Shown: positions 9,636 through 62,800 of the stretch, piece after piece
Layout of the letters: every line of letters begins with the position of its first letter
How positions within the stretch are numbered: the stretch's first letter is position 1
DNA from: Iphione sp. A-MEVVRFRX5
Lineage: Eukaryota
Direction: 5' to 3'
NCBI GenBank assembly: GCA_976226885.1
Contig: OZ320320.1
Location: forward strand, 10,044,001 to 10,108,000
DNA length: 64,000 bases
Notes under the pieces: generated by a model
Told to the model about the DNA's origin: nothing
Database searches by the model: none
What the model saw: the letters and a program-made list of their open reading frames with translations, nothing else
Made by a program: the position numbers and the translations under genes

Positions 9636-11349
9636 TGAGCATGCCATCTCCCACCTCTCCACGTACAAACAATGCCTACTTACACACAGACCACATAGAC
9701 AGGCAGCCTCAGCCAGGCAACAGCCTCATCACCCCAGCTTATCCGCGTACAAACAATGCCTACTTACACACAGACCACATAGACGGGCAGCCTCAGCCTC
9801 ATCACCCCAGCTTCTCCACCTACAAACAATGCCTACTTACATACAGACCACATAGACGGGTGGCCTCAGCCAGGCAACAGCCTCATCACCCCAGCTTATC
9901 CGCGTACAAACAATGCCTACTTACACACAGACCACATAGACGGGCAGCCTCAGCCTCATCACCCCAGCTTCTCCACCTACAAACAATGCCTACTTACATA
10001 CAGACCACATAGACGGGTGGCCTCAGCCAGGCAACAGCCTCATCACCCCAGCTTCTCCGCGTACAAACAATGCCTACTTACACACAGACCACATGGACGG
10101 GCGGCCTCAGCCAGGCAACAGCCTCATCACCCCAGCTTCTCTATCTACAAACAGTGCCTACTTACACACAGACCACATAGACGGGTGGCCTCAGCCAGGC
10201 AACAGCCTCATCACCCCAGCTTCTCCGCGTACAAACAATGCCTACTTACACACAGACCACATGGACGGGCGGCCTCAGCCAGGCAACAGCCTCATCACCC
10301 CAGCTTCTCTATCTACAAACAGTGCCTACTTACACACAGACCACATCGACGGCTGGCCTTGGCCAGGCAACAGCCTCTTCACCCCAGCTGCTCCATGGAC
10401 AAACAATGCCTACTTACACACAGACCACTTAGACGGCTGGCCTCTGCCAGGCAACAGCCTCAACATCCCAGCTTCTCCGCGTACAAACAATGCCTACTTA
10501 CACAAGAACTACATAGACAGGTGGCCTCAGCCAGGCAACAGCCTCATCACCCCAGCTTATCCGTGTACAAACAATGCCTACTTACATACAGGCCACATAG
10601 ACGGGCAGCCTCAGCCTCATCACCCCAGCTTCTCCACCTACAAACAATGCCTACTTACATACAGACCACATAGACGGGTGGCCTCAGCCAGGCAACAGCC
10701 TCATCACCCCAGCTTCTCCGCGTACAAACAATGCCTACTTACACACAGACCACATGGACGGGCGGCCTCAGCCAGGCAACAGCCTCATCACCCCAGCTTC
10801 TCTATCTACAAACAGTGCCTACTTACACACAGACCACATCGACGGCTGGCCTTGGCCAGGCAACAGCCTCTTCACCCCAGCTGCTCCATGGACAAACAAT
10901 GCCTACTTACACCCAGACCACTTAGACGGCTGGCCTCTGCCAGGCAACAGCCTCAACATCCCAGCTTCTCCACGTACAAACAATGCCTACTTACACAAGA
11001 ACCACATAGACAGGTGGCCTCAGCCAGGCGACAGCCTCATCACCCCAGCTTATCCGTGTACAAACAATGCCTACTTACATACAGGCCACATAGACGGGCA
11101 GCCTCAGCCTCATCACCCCAGCTTCTCCACCTACAAACAATGCCTACTTACATACAGACCACATAGACAGGCGGCCTCGGCCTCATCACCCCAGCTTCTC
11201 TATCTACAAACAGTGCCTACTTACACACAGACCACATCGACGGCTGGCCTTGGCACGGCAACAGCCTCTTCACCCCAGCTGCTCCATGGACAAACAATGC
11301 CTACATACACACAGACCACATAGACAGGTGGCCTCAGCCAGGCAACAGC
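9636..11349. repeat. Minisatellite of ~20 units of 84 bp with 73-bp deletion variants; includes a 493-bp higher-order repeat
   Basis: Anchor TACAAACAATGCCTACTT recurs at 84- or 73-bp spacing; the block starting 10230 repeats at 10723. Confidence 0.95.
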
Positions 11350-12255
11350 ATCATAACTGTGTTTTAGAGCTTGATTGGCACTTCCGAGCTTCGAGACAAA
11401 CATGTTGACTAAATGTAGCGTTGCTATACTTGTTTTAAATATTTTTTGTGGCCAAATTCTCATGATCTACTGATCCAATCAGTTTGAATATTGGCACACT
11501 CGTTCTGAGGTTAGTTTTCCTGAGAAACTACAGTGGAAGAATGGTAAACAGTTGCTTTTTGGTCGCAATTCCAGATCATTTGAACAACACCTAGCAGTCG
11601 TGATGTACATTTGGTGTAAATTTCATGGCGTTAGTCCAAATAGCGCAGAATAAGACAGATACACCAACGATGAACACCCCACAGTGACAGCCTTTGGCGG
11701 GACCCTCGTCCATAGCACTGGCTGAACAAACTAAAGGAAATGGGCGACAAGCAGCAAGACACAGCAGCCCGCTCCGTGAGCCGACTAGTGTCACTCTATA
11801 CAGAAACCAGGACCGAATGTATGCTAGTAGGTACATGTGCACAACCACACAGTATAAAACACATTAACTTTGAAATCATTGGAAATGATACAGAAATCAG
11901 CCAATGGCAAACATTCATACAGCAAAATACCACGTCAAGATATCAACTCCTATGATACAGTGGTTTGAAAGTTACAAGGCCCGTAAAATCATGACGAAGC
12001 ATCAGGCAGTCCAACAGAACAGCATTACCATGTCCCCTCCTGCGGTGGGGGACAAAAACCGTATCCATACATACGTATAAATGTACATGCAACAGATTGT
12101 AACCTTACAGAAATACCAAAAATGGCAAGACTACACAAGACGAGGACTGTTCTGCATAGATCGGACAGGCATATATAAACCATACTTGAGCCATACTACC
12201 ATAAACCATACTAACATGCCTCAAATACCAAGCAACTGGTACAAAAATAGGAACC

Positions 12256-18300: not shown

Positions 18301-21300
18301 TGTAATATATGTATACAGTAGATATAATTTTTTCTTTCCCAAAGTGTCCTTATTAGAGGCCTTACTGGAGACTTGTTCCCAAGGTGACCTTCCACTCTAC
18401 ATATTCTCATAACTTTCTCATTCTTTCAGTTCATTCCCCAGGCGATTCATTTTACAATATGTGTGCGTAAATTATTTCTTATATTTAAGCCTATTTAGTA
18501 AGCTGGGTAATCTGGACAGCATACAATTAATTGGTGAGTACATTACAATATGTGATAGTTTATACATGTACTCAATAAACTCTGTTTTCTTCCATGCGGC
18601 AGATGTCCTCTATCACCATCCAAACATCCTTTCAAATGTCAAACATGTTTATACATGGTAATACATGTATTCGCATCTACAAAGTTTATTTCGTAATAAA
18701 GAAGTAGCTACTGAGTTAGGTTACAGTCCATGAACTGACCTGCTTTCAGCGGGTTTGGCATGAAGTGGACATCAAAGTTCTTAAACTTGTGAGTCTTAGT
18801 GACTTCTTCCTCTACTTGACTCAGCTGGAAGGCTCTCTGCAACATAAACACGGAATAACATAGCTCTAAATCCTCATAATGGGAGGCTAGTACTACATAC
18901 ATGTAAGCCTCAATGATGAGAAGTGGTAAGTGATGCAGGGACTCAATATGGCGGTGGGGTTTTCACGTAATTTTATTGAAACAGAACAAAATTCAGCCAT
19001 AAATATATAAACTGTGAGTATTTTTTGTAAATATACCAACATATGTTTCACACACACAAATATATGCACACATGCACGCACGTACACACACAGACACACA
19101 AGTAGGAGGAGGCCGCCCGACGACAAATTCTGCCAACTCTAGCAGCTATACTATCCCTCTCCCCAGAACTCTAGTAGCCATGCTCTCTCACTGACTCTAG
19201 TGACCATGCTATCTCTCTCTCACTGACTCTAGCGGCCATGCTATCTCTCTCTTACTGACTCTAGTGGCCATGCGATCCCTCACTCACTGACTCTAGTGGC
19301 CATGCTATCCCTCTCTCACTGACTCTAGTGGCCATGCTGTCTCTCTCTCACTGACTCTAGTGGCCATGCTATCCCTCTCTCACTGACTCTAGCGGCTGTG
19401 CTATCTCTCTTTAACCAACTCTAGTGGCTATGCTGTCTCTCTTGCACCGACTCTAGTGGCCATGCTGTCTCTCTCTCACTGACTCTAGTGGCCATGCTAT
19501 CCCTCTAGGACTGACTCTAGTGGCCATGCTATTCCTCTCTCACTGACTAGTGGCCATGCTATCCCCCTTCTCACTGACTCCAGCAGCCATGCTATCCCTC
19601 TCTCACTGACTCTAGCGGCCATGCTGTCTCTCTCTCACTGACTCTAGTGGCCATGCTGTCTCTCTCTCACTGACTCTAGTGGCCATGTGATCCCTCTCAC
19701 ACTGACTCTAGTGGCCATGTGATCCCTCTCTAATTGACTTTAGTGGCCATGCTATCTCTCTCTTTCTGACTCTAGCGGCCATGCTATCCCTCTGTGACTT
19801 GCTCTAGCAGCCATGCTATGCCTCTCAATGACTCTAGCAGCCATGCTGTCTCTCTTTCACTGACTCTAGTGGCCATGCTATCCCTTTCTCACTGACTCTA
19901 GTGGCCTTGCTATCCTGTTCCCCCCAGACTTCAGCAGCCTTCCCATCCCTCTCTCATGGAATCTAGTAGCCATGCTATCCCTCTCTGACTCTAGTGGCCA
20001 TGTTATCCTGCTGCCACACACTCTCGCTGCCATGTTGTCCCTCTCTCACTGACACCAGGGCTCATACTATTCCCCAGGCTGAAATCACACCCTCTGAGGA
20101 GTAGATACCAGTTGGTTGCAATGTAAGTTGATTATGGCAGAAATCAACCTGTTCCCTTACCTTGATGTGTGAGTTAGTCTCAGACCAACAATAATGTGTG
20201 AGAGTGTATGTTATGAGTTTGAATGTCTATTGTGAGAGTTTGTATGTGGACCTCATGCAGGACAATGAATGCACAGAACCCCCCATACCAACAAGGTCCT
20301 CACCTCTGACGTCTGGTTGCGAATGGTCTCATTGCTTCCCATCCAACCCGCACATGGTGAAATCTGGAACAGACAGTAAATTGTATGATAAAACAGTTTC
20401 TCTTACAGTATGGAGTTTTAAAAAACGGTAAAAAAAACCCAAAACAAGTAGTATCTCGTGTAATGAAGAAGTTTCCCTGACAGTTTAGAAACTGGTGTAT
20501 TGAAGTTATCTATCTGAGGGTATAGTGGTACCTAGTAACTGGTGTAATGAAATAGTTTATCTGACAGTATAGAAACTGGTTTCATGAAGTTATCTATTTA
20601 CGGGTATCCAGGTAGTAACTAGTGTAATAAAGGAGTTTCCATAGTGCTATGTAGCTACAAGGTAGTATGATGAAGCAGTTTTTGCCTACCAGTGGAGAGG
20701 TTAGTCACTGTTATAATGACATACCTTCTCTGATAGCATACAGCTAGTGATGGCAACAGTGAGTCCCTGCTACCACTTCTCTACCACATCAACACTGCAC
20801 AATCAGCTCAGATAAGAGGATGTTCTTCACTGAATCTTATCAAGTTGGTCTGCTACTAGAGCAGGATTCTGTGTACTACAATGGTGTTGAATACAGCGGA
20901 ATCCCTCCAACCAGGACATCTTGTATTATGGAGAGTAAGTGTGCTGGAACCCACACAGACCCTTGGCACTTTGGTTTGGACACTGGGGATCTCAGACTGT
21001 ACAGCCTGCATCCGGGGTATGTGGTTTAGGAAGCACAGAGTTGTTAAAAAGTGCATGTGCACCCAGCGTGGCCTGGGGCCACCAGCGAGCCAGCAGCTGT
21101 GGGTCTCGGGTCAGCTGTTAATTACTGCTCGACATAAAGTAACAAATATACAACCCCAGATACTGCCACACACATAACAACAGACACACACACAACCCCA
21201 GATACTGCCACAAACATAACAACACACATACAACCCCAGATACTGCCACACACATAACAACAGACATACAACCCTAGATACTACCACACACATAACAACA

Positions 21301-23513
21301 GACATACAACCCTAGATACTGCCATACACATAACAACACACACACAACCCTGGATACCACCACACATATAACAACACACACACACAACCCTGGATACTGC
21401 CATAGACATAACAACACATACCACCCCAGATACACATAACAAGACACACACAACCCTAGATACCACCACACATATAATAACACACACACAACCCTGGATA
21501 CTGCCATACACATAACAACACACATACCACCCTGATACACATAACAAGACACACACAACCCCAGATACTGCCACACATAGAACAACACACACACACACAA
21601 CCCCGGATACTGCCATACACATAACAACACACACACAACCCTAGATACTGCCACACACATAACAACACACACACAACCCTGGATACTTCCATACACATAA
21701 CAACACACATAGCACCCAAGATACACATAACAAGACACACAACCCTAGATACTGCCACACATATAACAACACACACACACAACCCCAGATACTGCCATAC
21801 ACATAACAACACACATACCACCCTAGATACACATAACAACACACACACAACCCTAGATACTGCCACACACATAACAACACACACAACCCTAGATACTGTC
21901 ACACAAATAACAACACACACACAACCCTGGATACTGCCATACACATAACAACACACACACAACCCTAAATGCTGCCACACATATAACAGCACACATACAA
22001 TGCTAGATACTGGTACACACATGAGAACACATATAACACCCCAGATACACATAACAACACACACACAACCCTAGATACTTCCACACATATAACAACACAC
22101 ACACAACCCCGGATACTGCCATACACATAACAACACACATACCACCCTAGATACACATAACAACACACACACAACCCTAGATACTGCTACACACATAACA
22201 ACACGCATACAGCCCTAGATACTGCCACACACATAACAACACACACACACAACCCCAGATACTGCCATACACATAACAACACACATGCCATCCTAAATAC
22301 TGCCACACATATAACAACAGACAGACAGACCGACATTATATATGACCCTGGCTGCTGTCAGTCATATTACCTGGAGGCAGTTGAGGAAGTCATACAGATC
22401 ACGGTAGCGTATGTCGTGATGGAGGTTGCCTAATGGGTGCACACGGTCATGGAGGTTGTTGTATAAAACACGGCCATCAGCAAGACCAACAACAATCACG
22501 TGACTGTTGGCAGGCAGACGGGAATCCTGGTAGAAGTGAGACAAAATGAAGATCTCTTTCTTTTTAATGGAATGATTTGTAAACTGATACCATCTCTCGT
22601 ATAACTTGAAGCTCTGAGTTGAGTAAGCAAGCGATGCTCTTCACATTCTATTTCTTTGTTTTCCTGGGAGTTCCTCAGCAAACAACATTTTTCAGTTTTC
22701 TTCTCTGATGTTTCTATTAAATTCTTCTCTTAATCTATAGTTCTCTACACTTATTTACAAACAACATGGCTGAGACAGTCTATGCGTCGCCACCTGAACA
22801 CAACAGAAAAGTCACTGACTCTTGGCTGGGCAGAATTGACAGCACCTTCATTACCAATTAAAAGTGAAGTGAAAAAGATTCTTTCTTCCAAATCAGCTGA
22901 TTTCTAATCTGGCATTTATCCTATTTACCCAAATCATACAGGAACAGGAGTTCAATGAGAAATAAGGAAGACATAAATTTCTTAAGTAGATATGTAATGG
23001 TTCAAACATTCCTATAAGCACAGGTTCCTGACGGACGGGCTGAGGGCTGCACAACAGTATTGCTAGCTTTCAGAAACGATGGGGAACAAACTCAGGAGCA
23101 CAAAGTAGGGATAAAAACTAATGTTGTAAACAAAGTGATAAATTACCAGGAAATTCAGGGTGTTGATGAGGTTTGTGCGCATCTGGGCCGGTGTCGTCAT
23201 GTGAGCCACAGTGTCTTTCGAGTGCCTGAAAGATGCAAGTTGCGTGTCAGGTAACATTTACATCCTAATTTTTTAACATTTACATTCTCTGTGACAGGCA
23301 CAGTGTTCCACTGCATGATGCACCATATTACATTCCCTTCAATGAGATGAACGCCCATATGAGAATGTTTCCATGACGCTAGGCTACTAGTAACACGTTT
23401 TCATGACGCAAGGCCCCTACTAAAAGAGAGAGTATATGTGTGCATGGGGAGAGAGAGAGAGAATGTGTGTATGTGTGTGCGTGGGGAGACAGAGAGTGTG
23501 TATATGTGTGCGT

Positions 23514-52659: not shown

Positions 52660-53420
52660 CCCCTCTGATGTCTTGAGGCAGTTGGAAGAGAGGCTGACCA
52701 CTAGAGGGGAAGCGGGAAGGGGTCGGACAGTTGCAGGCAGTCAGGGAGAGAGGCTGACTGCAAGAGGGGATGTGGGAGGGGTCTGACAGTTGTAGGCAGT
52801 CAGGGTGAGAGGCAGACAGCTAGAGGGGATGTGAGAGGGGGTCTGACAGTTGCAGGCAGTCAGGGAGAGAGGCAGACAGGTAGAGGGGATATGGGAGGGG
52901 GTCTGACAGTTGCAGGCAGTCAGGGACAGAGGCAGACAGGTAGAGGGAATGTAGGAAGGGTCTAACAGTTGTAGGCAGTCAGGGAGAGAGGCCGACAGCT
53001 AGAGGGGGTGTGGAAGGGGGTCTGACAGTTGCAGGCAGTCAGGGAGAGAGGCAGACAGGTAGAGGGGATGTCGGAGGGGGTCTGACAGGTGCAGGCAGTC
53101 AGGGACAGAGGCAGACAGGTAGAGGGGATGTGGGAGGGGGTCTGGCAGGGGGGGGGGTCTGACAGCTGCAGGCATTCAGGGAGAGAGGCTAACCACTAGA
53201 GGGGATGTGGGAGGGGGTCTGACAGTTGTAGGCAGTCAGGGAGAGAGGCTGACAGGTAGAGGGGGTGTGGGAGGGGGTCTGACAGTTGCAGGCAGTCAGG
53301 GAGAGAGGCAGACAGGTAGAGGGGGTGTGGGAGGGGGTCTGACAGTTGCAGGCAGTCAGGAAGAGAGGCAGACAGGTAGAGGGGATGTGGGAGGGGGTCT
53401 GACAGTTGCAGGCAGTCAGG
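52660..53420. repeat. Minisatellite, 60-bp unit, ~12 copies, just upstream of PUS1 coding exon 1
   Basis: GGGGTCTGACAGTTGCAGGCAGTCAGGGAGAGAGGCAGACAGGTAGAGGGG repeated. Confidence 0.93.
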
Positions 53421-53549
53421 GACAGCTGGGCAAGGTGTGTGTTGGGGGTGGGTGGGTTTTAAGTCATATAAGGAAATCAAGACTGCAGCGGGAAATTGAT
53501 TACGTTTACTTTTTCCCCTTTTTCAGTCAGCTCATATATAGACTTCCAC

Positions 53550-53885
53550 ATGCGTTGTATCCTTTTGCGTGAAACCATAACCAGATTAAGTCACATAGTG
53601 AACATACCTAAAGCCCCGTCGCGAGGTCTTGGCTGCGGACCGTTGAGAATGTCATCAGACGGACCCCTGGTCCAGGTTGCACCAACCGAGACCCAGGTCA
53701 AGGTCGCACCAACTGAGACCCTTTCAGGGGACATAGGAGGCAAAGTTGGCTCACCAGGAAAGAGTGAAGAAGTTGTGAATCAGGAGAGTACTGGAGACAC
53801 AACGACTGCCAAAAGACCACATGAAGAGAATTCAAATGATGGACAAACTGGTGCAACTGAAGTGAAGAAGGCCAAAACTGAACAT
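53550..53885 (+). CDS. PUS1: PUS1 coding exon 1
   Basis: [42 protein letters not shown] donor in phase 0. Confidence 0.8.
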
Positions 53886-56800
53886 GTAAGTAAACAATGT
53901 AGTAATAAAATATCCATATCATAATATAAATAGAAATTCACTTATTAATGAAGTTAATTTGGGGAACATCCTATGATTAAGATAAAAATAAATGTCTTAG
54001 ACTACCATATTGATGTCTCTAATACGATCTGAGTTTGAATGCCAGCAGTTTGGTAATTAATGGAATGGTTCCGCTCGTTCGGAGTACAAACACTGATCTG
54101 TTTGCTTGTGAACATTGCTATGGTGAAGGGTTTTCTGTGTGGACAGCAGACTCCTGCTCTTTGTAGGACCGTCCGTTCTACAAGAAGAAGAAGAAGGTAG
54201 CGATGCTGCTCGTCTACTCCGGCAAGGGCTACACCGGCATGCAGATGTTAGTACCTCCCAACCGCCTACCAGCACAATAAGTATCTGTCCTACAGTCAAG
54301 TAAAGAAATACTCGCACATTTAAGCTCTAAGTTGTTTTGCATTAGTACAGCTCTTCTCCATGTTGAATTACCAGGAACCCTGGGATGAAGACCATAGAGC
54401 AGGACCTTCTCGATGCTCTCCTCAAGGCCGGCGTCGTCACGGAGGATCACGCGTCCAAACCAGGCACCAAGGTATAGTCACGTGACCAGCTGTAAATCAC
54501 ATGATCAGTATCACATCACTTCCCCATGTAACATCACTTTCTCATAAACTGAAGAGAAAGCCTCAATCAGGCAATGTCTTTTTCATGCAGGTTCACTCTA
54601 TGTAGTAGTCACTGGAAGTTTCGTTATATATTTTGCTGCTCCTCCTACAGATGGGGTTCCAGCGAGCAGCCCGGACCGACAAAGGCGTGTCAGCGGCAGG
54701 ACAAGTCGTCTCCTTGAAGATAAGTCTTCATTGCTCTGCCAGTAATGACGTTGACCTTTGAACTCTTAGCAAAGAGCAGGAGTTTCAGGTTCAATAGAGG
54801 GCATCGATACAGTGTGTATGCCGATGAACCGACGAGATGTAGAATGTCAGGTAGTTTCACAGGACATTAGAACTACAGTCCAAGACTACAGGACTAAATA
54901 GGCAGACCACAACGTGCAGATTTCATGTTATTTTTGAAATTTGCAAGTAACGACAGCACATGGACTGGCTGTGTTTACCTGCGGGGGGGGGGGAGCGGGA
55001 TGGTTACAGTTCAGCGTTCATGTGGAAAAAGTGTATTTCCGGTTCCTACATTGTAATCAATTGGGATGAGATTACAGGGATCCCTGTTGTGTAGCATATC
55101 CAGTGGAATGCCCCGAATCTGGAGACCCTTATTTCTAACCTGAGTTGTTCAGACTTTAGAGAGGGGAATCGAGTGAAAAAAGTCCTATATGGGGATGAAT
55201 TTCTGTCCCTGCATCAGTGCAGCTCAGAACTTTCCCTGTTTTAGTCTGAGTTGGAATAACGTTGCACCAGAATTACATGTAGCCTAAGTTAGGATGGAGG
55301 TGTAACAGAGGTGCCTATCATCTGAGTTAGCATAGAGGTGTAACAATGTTGCCTTTCCTAGGATAAAGGTGTAACAATGTTGCCTTTCCTAGGATAAAGG
55401 TGTAACAATGTTGCCTTTCCTAGGATAAAGGTGTAACAATGTTGCCTTTCCTAGGATAGAGGTGTAACAATGTTGCCTTTCCTGGGATAGAGGTGTAACA
55501 ATGTTGCCTTTCCTAGGATAGAGGTCTAACAATGTTGCCTTTCCTGGGATAGAGGTGTAACAATGTTGCCTTTCCTGGGATAGAGGTGTGAAAATGTTGC
55601 CTTTCCTGGGATAGAGGTGTGAAAATGTTGCCTTTTTGAGGTGTAACATAGGTGCCTATAGTTTGAGTTAGTTAGGGAAGTAACAGAAGTACCTTTCATG
55701 GGAGCTAGTGTGACATAATCAGTGGAACAACATTGGCGTACATTCTCACACTTCTACTGGTACCGTATTCACATGTTGGCACCCAGAGCGACTTCAGTAG
55801 AGCTGGCTTGAGAAGCGTCCCCGACAGGACCACCCTTATATTTCTACTGTCCTGATAGTAGACAATGTCAGACATACGTTAACTAGTGGTATTCCTTCTC
55901 ATTCTGTCCACATTTCTGGTACAGGCATATCTTGTGTGCCCAAGCTGATATTCCACTGTGTACATGCAGTCTAGGGTATATGTAATTTATATACAAGTAT
56001 ATTTTTTATATATATTTATGTAAATCTATATTTGTCTGTATACTGATATATAAATCTATATTTGTCTGTATACTGATATGAGTCCCAATTTTATCACAGC
56101 ACATGTTCGTGGATGTCCCGAATCTCCTGGAGAAGATCAACTCCCATCTTGCCGACCAGATCAGAGCATTAGGTAAACTCGTCTTTCATACCCATCCCAG
56201 ACTGGGGCTCAGGCACTGGCCGCAAGGGGTCTACGCGACAGCCCAGCTGTCAGTCAGTAAACCACAGTTGATATCAGACTTCACCAGGACACTTTGTATT
56301 AAGTATTACACCAGTTATGCAGACATTTGGAGAAGGGAGTCCAAGTATAAGTCATACCTCTCTAGTCTCTTCACCCGAACGCTTGCTAATTGTGTCTTAC
56401 CAGTACTTCATGGAAAGCCACCTTTTGGTATCCAACTGGTTTTTGATTATTTCCAACAACCTCCTCTCTTCTCGAAGTAATGTGTCAGCAAGCCTCATAC
56501 ATTATCATGGGAGAGCCTTGCCTTCACTTTGAAATTACAACTGTACAGGAAACTGTGACTTGGTTCTGTAGGGGGTCTGTTGAGAAGTGTACCATACTGA
56601 ACTTAGAGACACTTTTCTCCGTGTAAGCGAATGTAAATAAACTTAAAATATCGCTATGTTTTTAATAACTAGATTCTCACAGTTGACTGGAGTGGAGAAC
56701 AAAGTGTCCTTTGATAATGACGGCCAATCTTATCATTCATATTAATCAGCATTTATTGTTTAACAGGCATTTAACAGTAAAGACAGATGTTTCAAACCAT

Positions 56801-59800
56801 TCCGATAACCTTTTATTGATACCGATCAGGACATAGAAAGTGAAAGATGAGGTTGAAACATGTACATTGTAAACTACACTGACAAGCTGGTCATTCTCTT
56901 TGCTCAGGATTCAAGCGTGTAACACGAGGCTTCAGCAGTAAGGATAGCTGTTCCTCGCGAACCTACATGTACCTGTTGCCAACCTTTGCCTTCACACCAG
57001 TAGATGAGGTAAGTAAATCTAACCTTATCAGGATTTAAGCGTGTTACATGGGGCTTCAGCAGTAAGGACAGTTGCTCCTCATGAACCTACATGTACCTTT
57101 TGCCCACCTTTGCCTTCACACCAGTAGACAAGGTAATTAGATCTATATACATATGGATTTAAGCGTGTAACACAAGGCTTCAGCAGTAAGGACAGTTGTT
57201 CCTCGTGAAACTACATGTACCTGTTGCCCACCTTTGCCTTCACACCAGTAGACAAGGTAATAAGATCTATATACATACGGATTTAAGTGCGTAACACGAG
57301 GCTTCAGCAATAAGGACAGTTGCTCCTCGTGAAACTACATGTACCTGTTGCCCACCTTTGCCTTCACACCAGTAGACAAGGTAATTAGATCTATATACAT
57401 ACGGATTTAAGCGGGTAACATGAGGCTTCAGCAGTAAGGACAGTTGCTCCTCGTGAAACTACATGTACCTGTTGCCCACCTTTGCTTTCACACCAGTAGA
57501 TGAGGTAAGAAAATCTATATATATTCATCAGGATTTAAGCGTATTACATGAGGTTTAGGCAGTAAGGACAGTTGCTCCTCGTGAACCTACATTTACCTGT
57601 TGCCCACCTTCACCTTCACGCTGGTAAATGAGGTAAGTAAATCTATCCTTATCAGGATTTAAGCATGTAACATGAGGCTTGAGCAGTAAGGATAGCTGCT
57701 CCTCACAAAGCTACATCTACCTGTTGCCCATCTTTGCCTTCATGCCGGTAGACGAGGTCAGTACATCGTCCTTATGATTCAGCCTTGTAGAAGTGAGTTG
57801 TGATGTTTTTCTTGCTAATTGACTGATCACACACAGCGTGGCGGAGGAAGTTGTTAAAACCATGTCATTATGATGCTAGATGCAGAATGTCTGTATGGTA
57901 CACGTCATCGATCGATTGACCAATCGCTGCTTTATGTATTAATGTCAAAATAATGCTCTGCTACAACAGTTTCATGTCTGCTACCCAACGGAATGTGAAC
58001 AGTTTTGGCGTGTCTTTTTGGCATTATGATGTGATGTAGTAAGAAATGAAAATACTGTTGTAGTATCCTTTTGGCACTATGGTTTTATGTGGCAGTTGGG
58101 CAATTAGCAGACAGGTTTTGGGGGTCACAGTGCGAGTTTCTCATGCATCCCATCCAGAAATTCCATGATTGTAACTCAGTTCATATCTATTCCTGTTCAT
58201 TATGAGGAAGTTACAGCTGTAGACAGTACGATGATAAATACGCAACCTCTCCTTTTCATCAGTATGTCTTATGTATGGTTGATTAAGTCCTTGCTAGGGT
58301 ATTGCCACTTGCTCACCTAAAGCATTCTCCTGTTTTTCAGTTTGTCTTGGAGAGTTTTAAAATGTCAGGTATGTATAACACTACTCTCTTTTTTATGATG
58401 TACGTTGACTTCCTATAATTATATACATATATATATAGTAGAATCTTGTATAAAGGGACATTTTGTTGTTCAGAAAATTCACACACTTCACGCGTCGTAG
58501 TATGAATCGCCTCCAAGCTGAGAACTTCTCTACCAAATCCATAGCGGTTCCACTAGCATATGTAATAAAGTTCTGAAAAGCAATTTTTCATTATTATCAA
58601 CCTGTTTTCAGAGGAATTAAGAGGAGAGGTCAACAAAGTCCTGGGACTTTTCATAGGAACGCACAAATTCCACAATTTTACATCGGGAAAGTAAGTACCC
58701 GTAGGTTTTCATGAAGATCCCCAGTATTAAACTGTCCGTAGTAAATTCGCTGGAAATGGTGAAGAGCCACGTCAAGTGTGTTAGAGAAACTCTCAGCAAA
58801 GTTGCCTGTCTTTAAATTCCTTCTTTGGTACAATTAGGTACTTNNNNNNNNNNNNNNNNNNNNNNNNNNNNNNNNNNNNNNNNNNNNNNNNNNNNNNNNN
58901 NNNNNNNNNNNNNNNNNNNNNNNNNNNNNNNNNNNNNNNNNNNNNNNNNNNNNNNNNNNNNNNNNNNNNNNNNCGTGCGTGTGCGTATGTCTGTGCGTCT
59001 GTGTGTCTCATTCTCTCCCTCCCTCCTTATTCTTGACTTATGCATAAAGGTTTATCAACCATTTTACAGAGAAAAGAGAGGGAAAACCACAAAACCAGCT
59101 GAAATACTGTGAAATAGTATCAACTTTACAAACCCGTCCAAAATTATCGAATGTGGCTGACGGATGACGCATTTGAGCATGGACTGTGAAATGCAGCACT
59201 TGGGTAAAGATCCCATATTTATGTGTTCACGAAACTTTAGATACCAGAAAGTATCCACAGATAGAGACCCCAGAAGATGTGAGATGTTCTGACTGCTGTC
59301 TGTCCTTCTCTCGACAGGAAGCCTAATGATGCCAGTGCCCAGCGGTACATCATGGACATGTCGGTAAGCATGACTAACTCAAAGAGAACCTGGGGAGGAT
59401 CGGTGGATGATGTGCATGTAGGGCCAGCTCTAAGCAGCGTCACTCAGCCGTCCTTGACTCGACAGTGTGAAAGACGAGAAAACCGGATATTCAGTACTGT
59501 GATTCAGAGAGATCATAGAGATAAGCTGTACACTGATGCATTATTTAAATTCGATGTAAAGTTCGCCAGTAGAGTAAAGATATACGTACAAGTACATGTA
59601 CAGATAACGCCAACTCTAAATNNNNNNNNNNNNNNNNNNNNNNNNNNNNNNNNNNNNNNNNNNNNNNNNNNNNNNNNNNNNNNNNNNNNNNNNNNNNNNN
59701 NNNNNNNNNNNNNNNNNNNNNNNNNNNNNNNNNNNNNNNNNNNNNNNNNNNNNNNTTGGCTTGTTGAAAAACATGGTGCTAAGAGGCATGTTTCCCCCTT

Positions 59801-62800
59801 CAGGTAATAAATATTAGACTATAAGTAACCAGGCACGATATCCTGACCATTTGACAGTTGACTTTCTGTTATGGGAGAGAGCACAGTTGTGTGAAGTTAT
59901 GGGAGACTAGCTGCACAGTGGTGTAAAGTTACGGGGGAGGTAGCTGCACATTTGTGTGAAGTTATGGGAGACAGCTGCACAGTTGTGTGGTGTATAGCTA
60001 ATATAGCTGTATGTTTGGTGCAGATCGGGGAGCCTTTCCTGGCGGAGAACGTGGAGTACGCTGTGATCAGTGTCCGTGGACAGAGCTTCATGCTGCATCA
60101 GATCAGGAAGATGATAGGTTTGTTCTGGATGTAGTTAGAAGTGGTTTGGTGGAGCTTGGGAGGTGTCGAATGGACTGACCCTTTGCCTGTTACAACTGTA
60201 CTGAAACGTGTGATCCTGTCTGCTGGAATGGACGGATCGCCTCACGCATACACAGTGTCATTAATGATGCCATGACACCACAGGTCAAACTACGACTACC
60301 CACATACTGCTAGTAAAAAATCAACATAGGCTGTATCTTCCTAAGCCAGAAGGAACTCTTCAGATTTTAATGATATCTATATCAAAGGAAGGCCTAAGGA
60401 GGAAAATGAGCCATAGCATGGCTCTCTAGATGGCGCTGTAATGACAATTCGGCGATCGGTCCGTTGCTGCTCTGCTCACGTTGTATCATCTTGTAATTTG
60501 TTGAATAATTCTTTGTAGCGTTTTTCAAGAAAATTCACCTTAAGACTGCATGCCAATATCCTCGTTTATCTAAAAGTTTGTAGATTGAAGTGATAAATAG
60601 CTGCGTTGTCTAGTGGTTTAATGATTATTGGAGGAGTGATAACTTCCAAAATACAGGGATAATAACATCAACCATAAGTGATCATTTCTGGACGTACACC
60701 CAAAGAAAGATCAATAGTATCAAACTGAATGTCAATTTATTAGGATAAGAGATTATAGGAATTTTAGTGAAAATTACTTTTGTTTGGATATGGAGAGAAA
60801 TTTAACTAATTTTGATCACAACAGTAACACAACTGACAAATGGAATTTTTGGAAGATAAGATTAAGGATACACTGGACAGACATGCACCATATAAGTTCA
60901 AGAAAGTTCCTATCAATATTACCAAATAGATAACCAAAAAAATTACTAAACTTAGAAAAACTAAGCTCAAACCTTTCAAACAATATCTCAAGAAATCCTA
61001 CAGCAAGCCAGACAAGTATGCAATACTCTTAACTCTAAAATTAGACAGGCCAAGGGGAATTACACCACAATGAAGCTCAATCAATATAGACATGAACAAT
61101 GTAAATACTGGAAAGAACTCCGAACCCTCCTTCCTAGCACAAAGTCAAATTGACAATAGAGAAATTATATTACCAAAACGTGAAAACCACAGGTCAAGAG
61201 GAGATTGCAAACTTACTTAACACACATTTCACAGATGTAGGTAGAAACACTCAGGATACACTACCCATGGCACCAACTACATAGCAACCCAATGTCAGAC
61301 ATCATAAACAACTTCAAATACAAGTATCTTGGACTTATTCTAGACAACCTCACTATAAAAGAACACATAGTACACATGACCCAGAAGCTAAGCACCACAC
61401 TCATTGCACTGAACATAATGAACAAATATGTTGACAATAAAACAAACCTCCTCCTATACAAATTATTAGCACTGCCTCATATTGATTACCTAGATATTAT
61501 ATGGTCCACAGTACCGCACAAATATATCACGCAAATACAATGCTTACAAAACAGGGGATTAAAAAGAGCTGTCCAATTGGACAGTAGGACACCCAAAGTA
61601 CAAGTACATGAACAAACAAACATGATGAGAATTACTGAACGTATTAACCTACATTTACTCATACAAGGATACAAAGCCTTTTTTACATACGAAAGCACCT
61701 GAAAAATTCAAGAAATCACCTATTAATTGAGAGACAATTTTGCGGCCAAATTCACGAGTCCACCAGATGCCCACACAACACATATTTCAAAAACGACATA
61801 TTGCAGAATCATTAATAGAAGGAATATGACGAAAATACATGCAACACACTACGAAACAAGAAACGTAATACGGAGTTTCAAAGCTGAAATAACACAGAAA
61901 TGGAAGAATAATGACATGAACCTGTGCTAACCAAACCTCTGTTCAATCTTGATGTATAACAGTATTTAGTACTGACCTAGTAAGGATAGTCAAGAAACCC
62001 TCTCAGATAGCTAAGTTTTTCAAGCATTTGTTGCTGCTCCCCAGCCTTATTTCACAATGTATTGTACCTTACAGCACCGGCTGTAAACCAGCCATTAGGC
62101 TAATGCCGGAATGCTGTTTAAAAGCAATAAAAAAGTACTCTGTTATTAAGTGCAAGCCCTCCAGTTTCACAGTGCGTCAGTGATTGTAAAGTCTCAGACA
62201 AGACCACCAAATTCACACCAAGTGTGTCAGTGATTGTAGAGTCTCAGATCTCATTGACTTAAAAAACTAATGTCTCTAGTTGGAGCGTCCGGCTCAGGAA
62301 ATACACCCCCCCCCCCCCATTACATCAGAACCTGCTTTACCTGGCAGCGGGTGATCAGGTTATAAGGATAGGAACCGTTTTATTCACTTCTTTCTGTATT
62401 CTTGAAGTGGGAATGACGTCACACTGGCTGATAAGCCTGGTACCCTTAGTCAAATGTAGGTCAGTTTGCCTGGGGTGGAGGTGAAAGGTAGTGTGTTTCT
62501 CTCTTTGAGTCATTATAATGTTTATGTCCATAATAATCATTTGGCAATGATTTCAATGCCAACTCTGATATTATAATGAAAACACACCTAGAACTACCTG
62601 TAGATAGAGTTCATATGTCAAAATTATTATCAGTTTGTTTTCACTAGGCCTTAGATTTCACATTAGAATATGCAGAAACTCCCTGTTTATCACCCACTTT
62701 TCACCTCTGTAGGGTTTTTGCTAAATAAGAAATTTTAACAGAGGATTTTTATCTAAATACTAATGTGGTCTTTTAGATTAATACTAAAGCTACACATTTA

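Follow-up and report, generated by a model that had tools for sequence, protein, structure and literature searches.

The analysed window, a 64,000-nucleotide stretch of contig OZ320320.1 from Iphione sp. A-MEVVRFRX5 (positions 10,044,001 to 10,108,000, assembly GCA_976226885.1), contains the gene of the TruA-family pseudouridine synthase 1 (PUS1), in which exon 6 is followed by six decayed tandem copies of itself. The host gene was recognized by exon-by-exon similarity to orthologues, which extends to the RTDKGVSA motif of the catalytic site and to the R-T-Y-x-Y stretch, and a total of 11 PUS1 exons were placed in order on the + strand by tblastn of the orthologues P0102, P0055 and P0074 on the window. 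The orthologues had been fetched with the exon-6 peptide; the nearest one, P0102, derives from another organism's transcript contig and matched the human PUS1 structure 4IQM at 4.9e-109, and the relatives carry the name pseudouridylate synthase 1 homolog. When close relatives were sought for a comparison between species with the exon-6 peptide (138 hits) and with a word search of P0102 (3267 hits), only distant orthologues were obtained, their proteins being about 60-65% identical. PUS1 occupies a single locus in the 1.18-Gb genome, and no retrocopy (mRNA fossil) of it was detected there. Single exons, which are too short, gave no Pfam match at the cut-off, and no Rfam matches were obtained over 53000-62000.

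The array was reported by Tandem Repeats Finder as one repeat at 56904-57767, with a period of 124, 6.9 copies, 86% matches and a score of 1162. The unit periods along it are 124, 124, 124, 124, 128 and 124, and a second repeat search returned start-to-start spacings of 124, 124, 124 and 252. The seven exon-like parts, whose starts were fixed by an anchored scan and a MAFFT alignment (Table 1), are all exactly 101 nt long, stand in the same phase and in register, and are followed by a GT, with spacers of 23, 23, 23, 23, 27 and 23 nt between the copies. Each unit contains the full donor border, that is the exon end, the GT and about 20 nt of intron, and only the last 3-4 nt (TCAG) of the acceptor border, while the pyrimidine tract and the branch site upstream are not part of it. 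With 80-95% identity between copies across the 101 nt, and with no other locus in the whole genome containing the unit, a chance origin is not at issue; a second haplotype copy of the array was likewise not found in the genome. The reading frame of copy 1 starts with a single base brought in from exon 5, finishes with a complete codon and matches the orthologues, and copy 1 is accordingly predicted to be the authentic working exon. Three open reading frames inside the array had no exact match in the protein collection, and local alignment for an eighth, degenerate copy beyond 57775 was not significant against shuffles.

The hexamer GATTCA, which forms the first six bases of exon 6 in copy 1, recurs at 57776-57781 straight after the CCTTAT of the last unit and in register with the array, and this short direct repeat may mark the founding slippage.

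An earlier note on this DNA had described seven copies at a 124-128-bp period at 56908-57756; these coordinates were exact and every factual statement made there holds. Codon reading bore out that only copy 1 is open and that copies 2-7 have TGA at one or both Arg codons, the GT donor was recovered in all copies and the CAG in copies 2, 6 and 7 with its loss in copies 3-5, and the point made there on the spacers, whose 23-27 nt leave no room for splicing, is sound.

Table 1. Features of the PUS1 locus around the exon-6 array. Positions are those of the window; slashes separate the first and second Arg codon, and exon from intron at the donor.
Feature	Positions	Strand	Arg codons	Acceptor end	Donor	Remarks
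PUS1 exon 5	56103-56172	+				23 residues and the first base of a Gly codon; tblastn to orthologues and sequence reading
Whole tandem array	56904-57775	+				7 head-to-tail units: TCAG (or decayed form), 101-nt exon-6 sequence, ~20 nt of intron
Copy 1, predicted authentic exon 6	56908-57008	+	CGA/CGA	CAG	GAG/GTAAGT	Only open copy (33 residues)
Copy 2, pseudo-exon	57032-57132	+	TGG/TGA	CAG kept	AAG/GTAATT	
Copy 3, pseudo-exon	57156-57256	+	CAA/TGA	AG lost (ATG)	AAG/GTAATA	
Copy 4, pseudo-exon	57280-57380	+	CGA/TGA	AG lost (ACG)	AAG/GTAATT	
Copy 5, pseudo-exon	57404-57504	+	TGA/TGA	AG lost (ACG)	GAG/GTAAGA	27-nt spacer after it
Copy 6, pseudo-exon	57532-57632	+	TGA/TGA	CAG kept	GAG/GTAAGT	Perfect donor
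Copy 7, pseudo-exon	57656-57756	+	TGA/CAA	CAG kept	GAG/GTCAGT	Most diverged copy, 3' edge
Intron 6	57009-58340	+				1332 nt; first ~59% is copies 2-7 and spacers
Exon 7 (28-nt micro-exon)	58341-58368	+		cctgtttttcag	GTATGT	FVLESFKMS and one base
Exon 8	58612-58690	+				Encodes (E) and 26 residues; tblastn to orthologues

The differences among the copies are unevenly distributed. Copies 2-5 differ from one another at 5-9 of 101 positions and from copy 1 at 9-13, and copies 6 and 7 differ from all other copies at 15-20 positions. The maximum-likelihood tree placed copies 2-5 in one clade with support of 92/91 and short branches, and copies 6 and 7 outermost on the longest branches. The interior units are homogenised and the border units diverged, and the two edge copies, 1 and 7, share the states T38, C41 and C51; the corresponding bases of copies 2-6 are C, T and T. 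Judged from the sequences, this tree shape appears to be that of usual minisatellite turnover, with young interior units that are exchanged and older edge units that escape exchange.

The substitutions were concentrated at CpG sites, with 15 of 16 columns in CpG context (in a CpG in any copy) being variable, as against 19 of the 85 other columns, and 27 of the 34 variable columns showing transitions only. Copy 1 contains four CpGs and each other copy one to three, and the CpG observed/expected ratio of the window is 0.48. Such a pattern would fit germline gene-body methylation as the main mutational route. The earlier note had suggested, as one of two readings, that the exon satellite is neutral and that its methylated CpGs decay, and these figures favour the neutral decay; its wording that the copies were "silenced by" methylation does not stand, as methylation accounts for the mutational route only. 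The second Arg, which lies within the R-T-Y-x-Y stretch, is R in 138 of 138 aligned orthologues, so the copies are disabled at a residue never changed in the enzyme family. Its TGA is common to copies 2-6 and would most simply be explained by one mutation that was then amplified (copy 7 has CAA), while the first Arg codon has changed at places spread across the tree, which looks like recurrent decay. Here too the wording of the earlier note does not stand, five separate decays at the second Arg codon being the less simple account.

The acceptor side was scored as the number of pyrimidines in the 17 positions from -20 to -4. Copy 1 has 13/17 pyrimidines with a CACTGAC branch-like site upstream. 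Among the six real acceptors scored, five have 12-13/17 pyrimidines with runs of 6-10, and that of exon 10 has 9/17 with a run of 3. The pseudo-acceptors of copies 2, 6 and 7 reach 9-10/17 with runs of 3-5, the tract of copy 6 being weak (10/17, longest run 3), and no acceptor AG is present in copies 3-5. The CAG of copy 2 lies only 23 nt past the donor of copy 1 and is preceded by a CTAAC branch-like word. Two adjacent copies could not be included in one mRNA, since no intron would fit into the 23-27 nt that separate them.

Joined exon models were translated locally, only in order to place the stops. The stop comes after 9 codons when copy 6 is joined to copy 1 and after 4 codons when copy 7 is joined to it; with copy 2 in place of copy 1 it falls at the second Arg codon, and with read-through past the donor of copy 1 it comes after 9 codons, in the spacer. 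The joins of copy 1 with copy 6 or copy 7 place the premature stop upstream of later junctions, which is a property of the sequence only. From these signals copy 6 would be the best candidate for occasional inclusion. Only AT-rich chance pairs were found when the flanks of the array were searched for selector/docking complementarity.

The exon map was also corrected, exon 5 being set at 56103-56172. Downstream of the array, the map between exon 6 and the exon at 58612 lacked about 10 residues that every orthologue has, and a scan for open AG...GT segments of length 3n+1 yielded the 28-nt micro-exon. Its peptide aligns with FTMESYRIT of P0102, and the successor of exon 6 is therefore this micro-exon and not the exon at 58612, which sets the end of intron 6 as given in Table 1. 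The micro-exon has clean cag/GTATGT borders and was found by homology only, and gene predictors could easily overlook it.

We infer that the array has no function, and we regard it, with a probability of roughly 0.7, as a neutral whole-exon "mirage" minisatellite. It would have been born by local tandem duplication of a unit that took in exon 6 in full (101 nt), TCAG and some 20 bases of the following intron, donor included, and unequal exchange or replication slippage would have brought it to seven units. Copy 1 would have retained the real branch site and pyrimidine tract and so remained the working exon, while the six downstream copies, lying inside intron 6, would be removed with the intron. 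Being unconstrained, the extra copies would have decayed, fastest at methylated CpGs; an early CGA-to-TGA change at the invariant Arg codon may have been spread to five copies by later amplification, and three interior copies would also have lost their AG. The window as a whole carries 30 tandem arrays, many of them with periods of 20-180 bp, which make up 17.8% of the 64 kb, and the exon-6 array is best read as a by-product of a high rate of local tandem duplication in this genome.

Several observations weigh against neutrality. No indel was detected in any of the six 101-nt pseudo-exon bodies, and all six pseudo-donors are as near the consensus as many real PUS1 donors, which include GTTAGT, GTATAG, GTAAAC and GTTTGT, with the donor of copy 6 being perfect. 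Copies 6 and 7 retain their CAG, and the non-use of copies 2-7 in splicing, which we infer from their sequence, is a point of weakness. Furthermore, synonymous or third-position changes account for 20 of 40 events, against 11 expected under the neutral spectrum (p ~0.002). The copies of the clade that carries the stop show this synonymous excess as well. A column-based count was not significant, the variable columns per codon position (18, 8 and 8) being borderline at most; the excess was therefore attributed to recombination among the copies and not to coding constraint. As a sign of function it was rejected on four grounds, namely a wrong parsimony root, exchange homoplasies that inflate the count, its persistence in stop-bearing copies and the borderline column count, and exchange between copies is probably its cause.

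The arrays most similar to the one described here are the "mirage" minisatellites of amphioxus, which are tandem copies of exon-intron borders in Adh3, the globins BflGb6 and BflGb9, TnC and PGBD5 (PMC3087553; PMC3902484), those of Adh3 being credited to Canestro et al. 2002 as cited in PMC3087553. Like these, the PUS1 array is a head-to-tail repeat of minisatellite size whose unit contains an exon edge and a splice signal, and the unit taken as authentic stands at one end. The amphioxus globin mirages have units of 150-160 bp with 81-100% identity, in which the interior is homogenised and the boundary units are excluded from homogenisation (PMC3087553), and the PUS1 array shows the same homogenised interior and diverged borders with a unit of 124 bp. 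However, the amphioxus units hold one border and part of an exon, whereas the PUS1 unit spans the entire exon together with its donor and the last acceptor bases, which gives each copy the look of a full pseudo-exon, and the host is a worm-like invertebrate and not a lancelet. Length polymorphism and undisturbed splicing were shown for the amphioxus arrays, while the PUS1 array is known from the assembly. A second comparison is offered by decayed intronic exon duplicates (pseudo-exons), known from exon-to-gene similarity searches (PMC9013439). The PUS1 copies resemble them in being decayed coding-exon copies in the neighbouring intron of their own gene, but such duplicates usually occur as one copy at kilobase distance, whereas PUS1 has six in a tight array with 23-27-nt spacers.

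The alternative that comes closest, which we consider quite possible though less likely than the main reading, is noisy use without function, in which a small share of PUS1 pre-mRNA would use copy 6 or 7 after exon 6, copy 2 instead of copy 1, or a later donor, and the product, stopping early, would be cleared by nonsense-mediated decay (NMD). This would cost a little output without any regulation and, since it is compatible with a neutral minisatellite, would perhaps do no more than add a leak to it. The CAG in copies 2, 6 and 7, the GT donors in all copies, strong in copies 5 and 6, and the CTAAC word ahead of the copy 2 CAG would permit such use, and the modelled products all stop early, 4-9 codons into copy 7 or copy 6, at the second Arg of copy 2 or 9 codons into the spacer. 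The short pyrimidine runs of the pseudo-acceptors, the branch region that was not copied with the unit and the distance of just 23 nt between the copy 2 CAG and the copy 1 donor argue against it. The published mirages, in addition, gave no aberrant mRNAs by reverse-transcription polymerase chain reaction (PMC3087553; PMC3902484).

Far less probable is a regulated set of poison exons and decoy donors, in which controlled inclusion of copies 6 and 7 or use of later donors would send a set share of PUS1 mRNA to NMD, with copy number tuning that share. Poison exons, that is unproductive splicing coupled to NMD, are known from SR-protein genes and others, and in PUS1 a stop well before the last junction would likewise result from inclusion of copy 6 or 7. 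The sequence is permissive, as copies 6 and 7 combine CAG, good donors, a length of 101 nt that is not a multiple of 3 and early stops, and the pseudo-exon bodies are free of indels. Nevertheless, the pseudo-exon acceptors are weak or absent, and the copies drift like unconstrained DNA, diverging by 5-20% with nearly all CpG sites changed. Conservation is typical of known poison exons. The AG is gone from the three youngest copies, a window with so much tandem repeat makes a special explanation unnecessary, and the published mirage arrays left splicing undisturbed (PMC3087553; PMC3902484). The bank of poison exons put forward in the earlier note is thus narrowed, in sequence terms, to copies 6 and 7, and it received no positive support and runs contrary to the published arrays.

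We find it very unlikely that the array is a dead cluster of once-functional alternative exons, in which mutually exclusive versions of exon 6 later lost their frames. Tandem exon duplication has led to mutually exclusive exons in tropomyosin, Dscam, MRP and others (survey of 2002; PMC9013439). The PUS1 copies are similar to such clusters in being whole-exon copies of equal length and phase, with gaps too short for introns and for two neighbours in one mRNA, and the event-based synonymous excess (p ~0.002) could be taken as a trace of former coding. That excess, however, persists in copies with the shared stop and vanishes in the column-based count. Unlike mutually exclusive exons, all copies but the first have stops in or close to the invariant residue, so that the frames are closed in copies 2-7; three copies lack the AG, no pseudo-copy has its own pyrimidine tract and the flanks have no docking/selector complementarity. 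The unit never had a pyrimidine tract or branch site, and the region encodes the invariant R-T-Y-x-Y stretch, which leaves little orthologue variation to exploit. Since only one of the seven copies is able to code, the question of mutually exclusive splicing raised in the earlier note does not arise. An assembly artefact, with one exon 6 or another copy number at the true locus, is equally improbable: tandem arrays can be mis-sized, and one of the amphioxus mirages was assembled wrongly in a draft genome (PMC3087553), but the differences between the copies here, at 5-20 positions out of 101, are arranged like a tree, as collapse or stutter errors would not be. The array is also only 0.87 kb long, no N lies close to it, and the assembly is chromosome-scale with 89 contigs.

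Other features of the gene and its surroundings were also recorded. The catalytic RTDKGVSA exon ends at 54719 and is followed by an intron (54720-56102, +) that starts with ATAAGT and ends with AC; exon 5 stands after this AT-AC intron and before the donor GTAAAC. The same intron carries a very young array at 55328-55635 (31 bp x 9.9, 96% matches). A G-rich 60/179-bp minisatellite is located at 52676-53422, directly upstream of PUS1 exon 1, and an in-frame 27-bp repeat of 2.1 copies lies within the exon-1 coding region at 53665-53721. Further examples of arrays in the window are an 84-bp repeat x 19 at 9794-11354, a 32-bp repeat x 27 at 19183-20053 and a 38-bp repeat x 32 at 21150-22327. In the P0140/P0139 set of PUS1 models, that of the sea urchin (672 aa) duplicates its own C-terminal half and that of the centipede (801 aa) consists of two fused PUS1 units; both probably arose by fusion during annotation or assembly and have nothing to do with the exon-6 array.

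If the regulated alternative were true, controlled use of copies 6 and 7 and of the six additional donors would divert part of the pre-mRNA of the only PUS1 gene to stop-bearing forms targeted by NMD. Array length would set that share and act as a dial, inherited and quick to mutate, on a housekeeping enzyme of RNA modification. As a neutral minisatellite, the array would show that a "mirage" can comprise a whole exon and not just exon edges, and would take the class beyond lancelets to another invertebrate lineage. Such arrays might be raw material for mutually exclusive exons or new introns, although the copies here are already dead, and in annotation they can mislead gene predictors. The array would also be a natural test of how the spliceosome chooses a true exon among near-perfect look-alikes, as in this essential single-copy gene the true exon is directly followed by six decoys whose donors are good, and the visible difference is the pyrimidine tract and branch site of the true copy.

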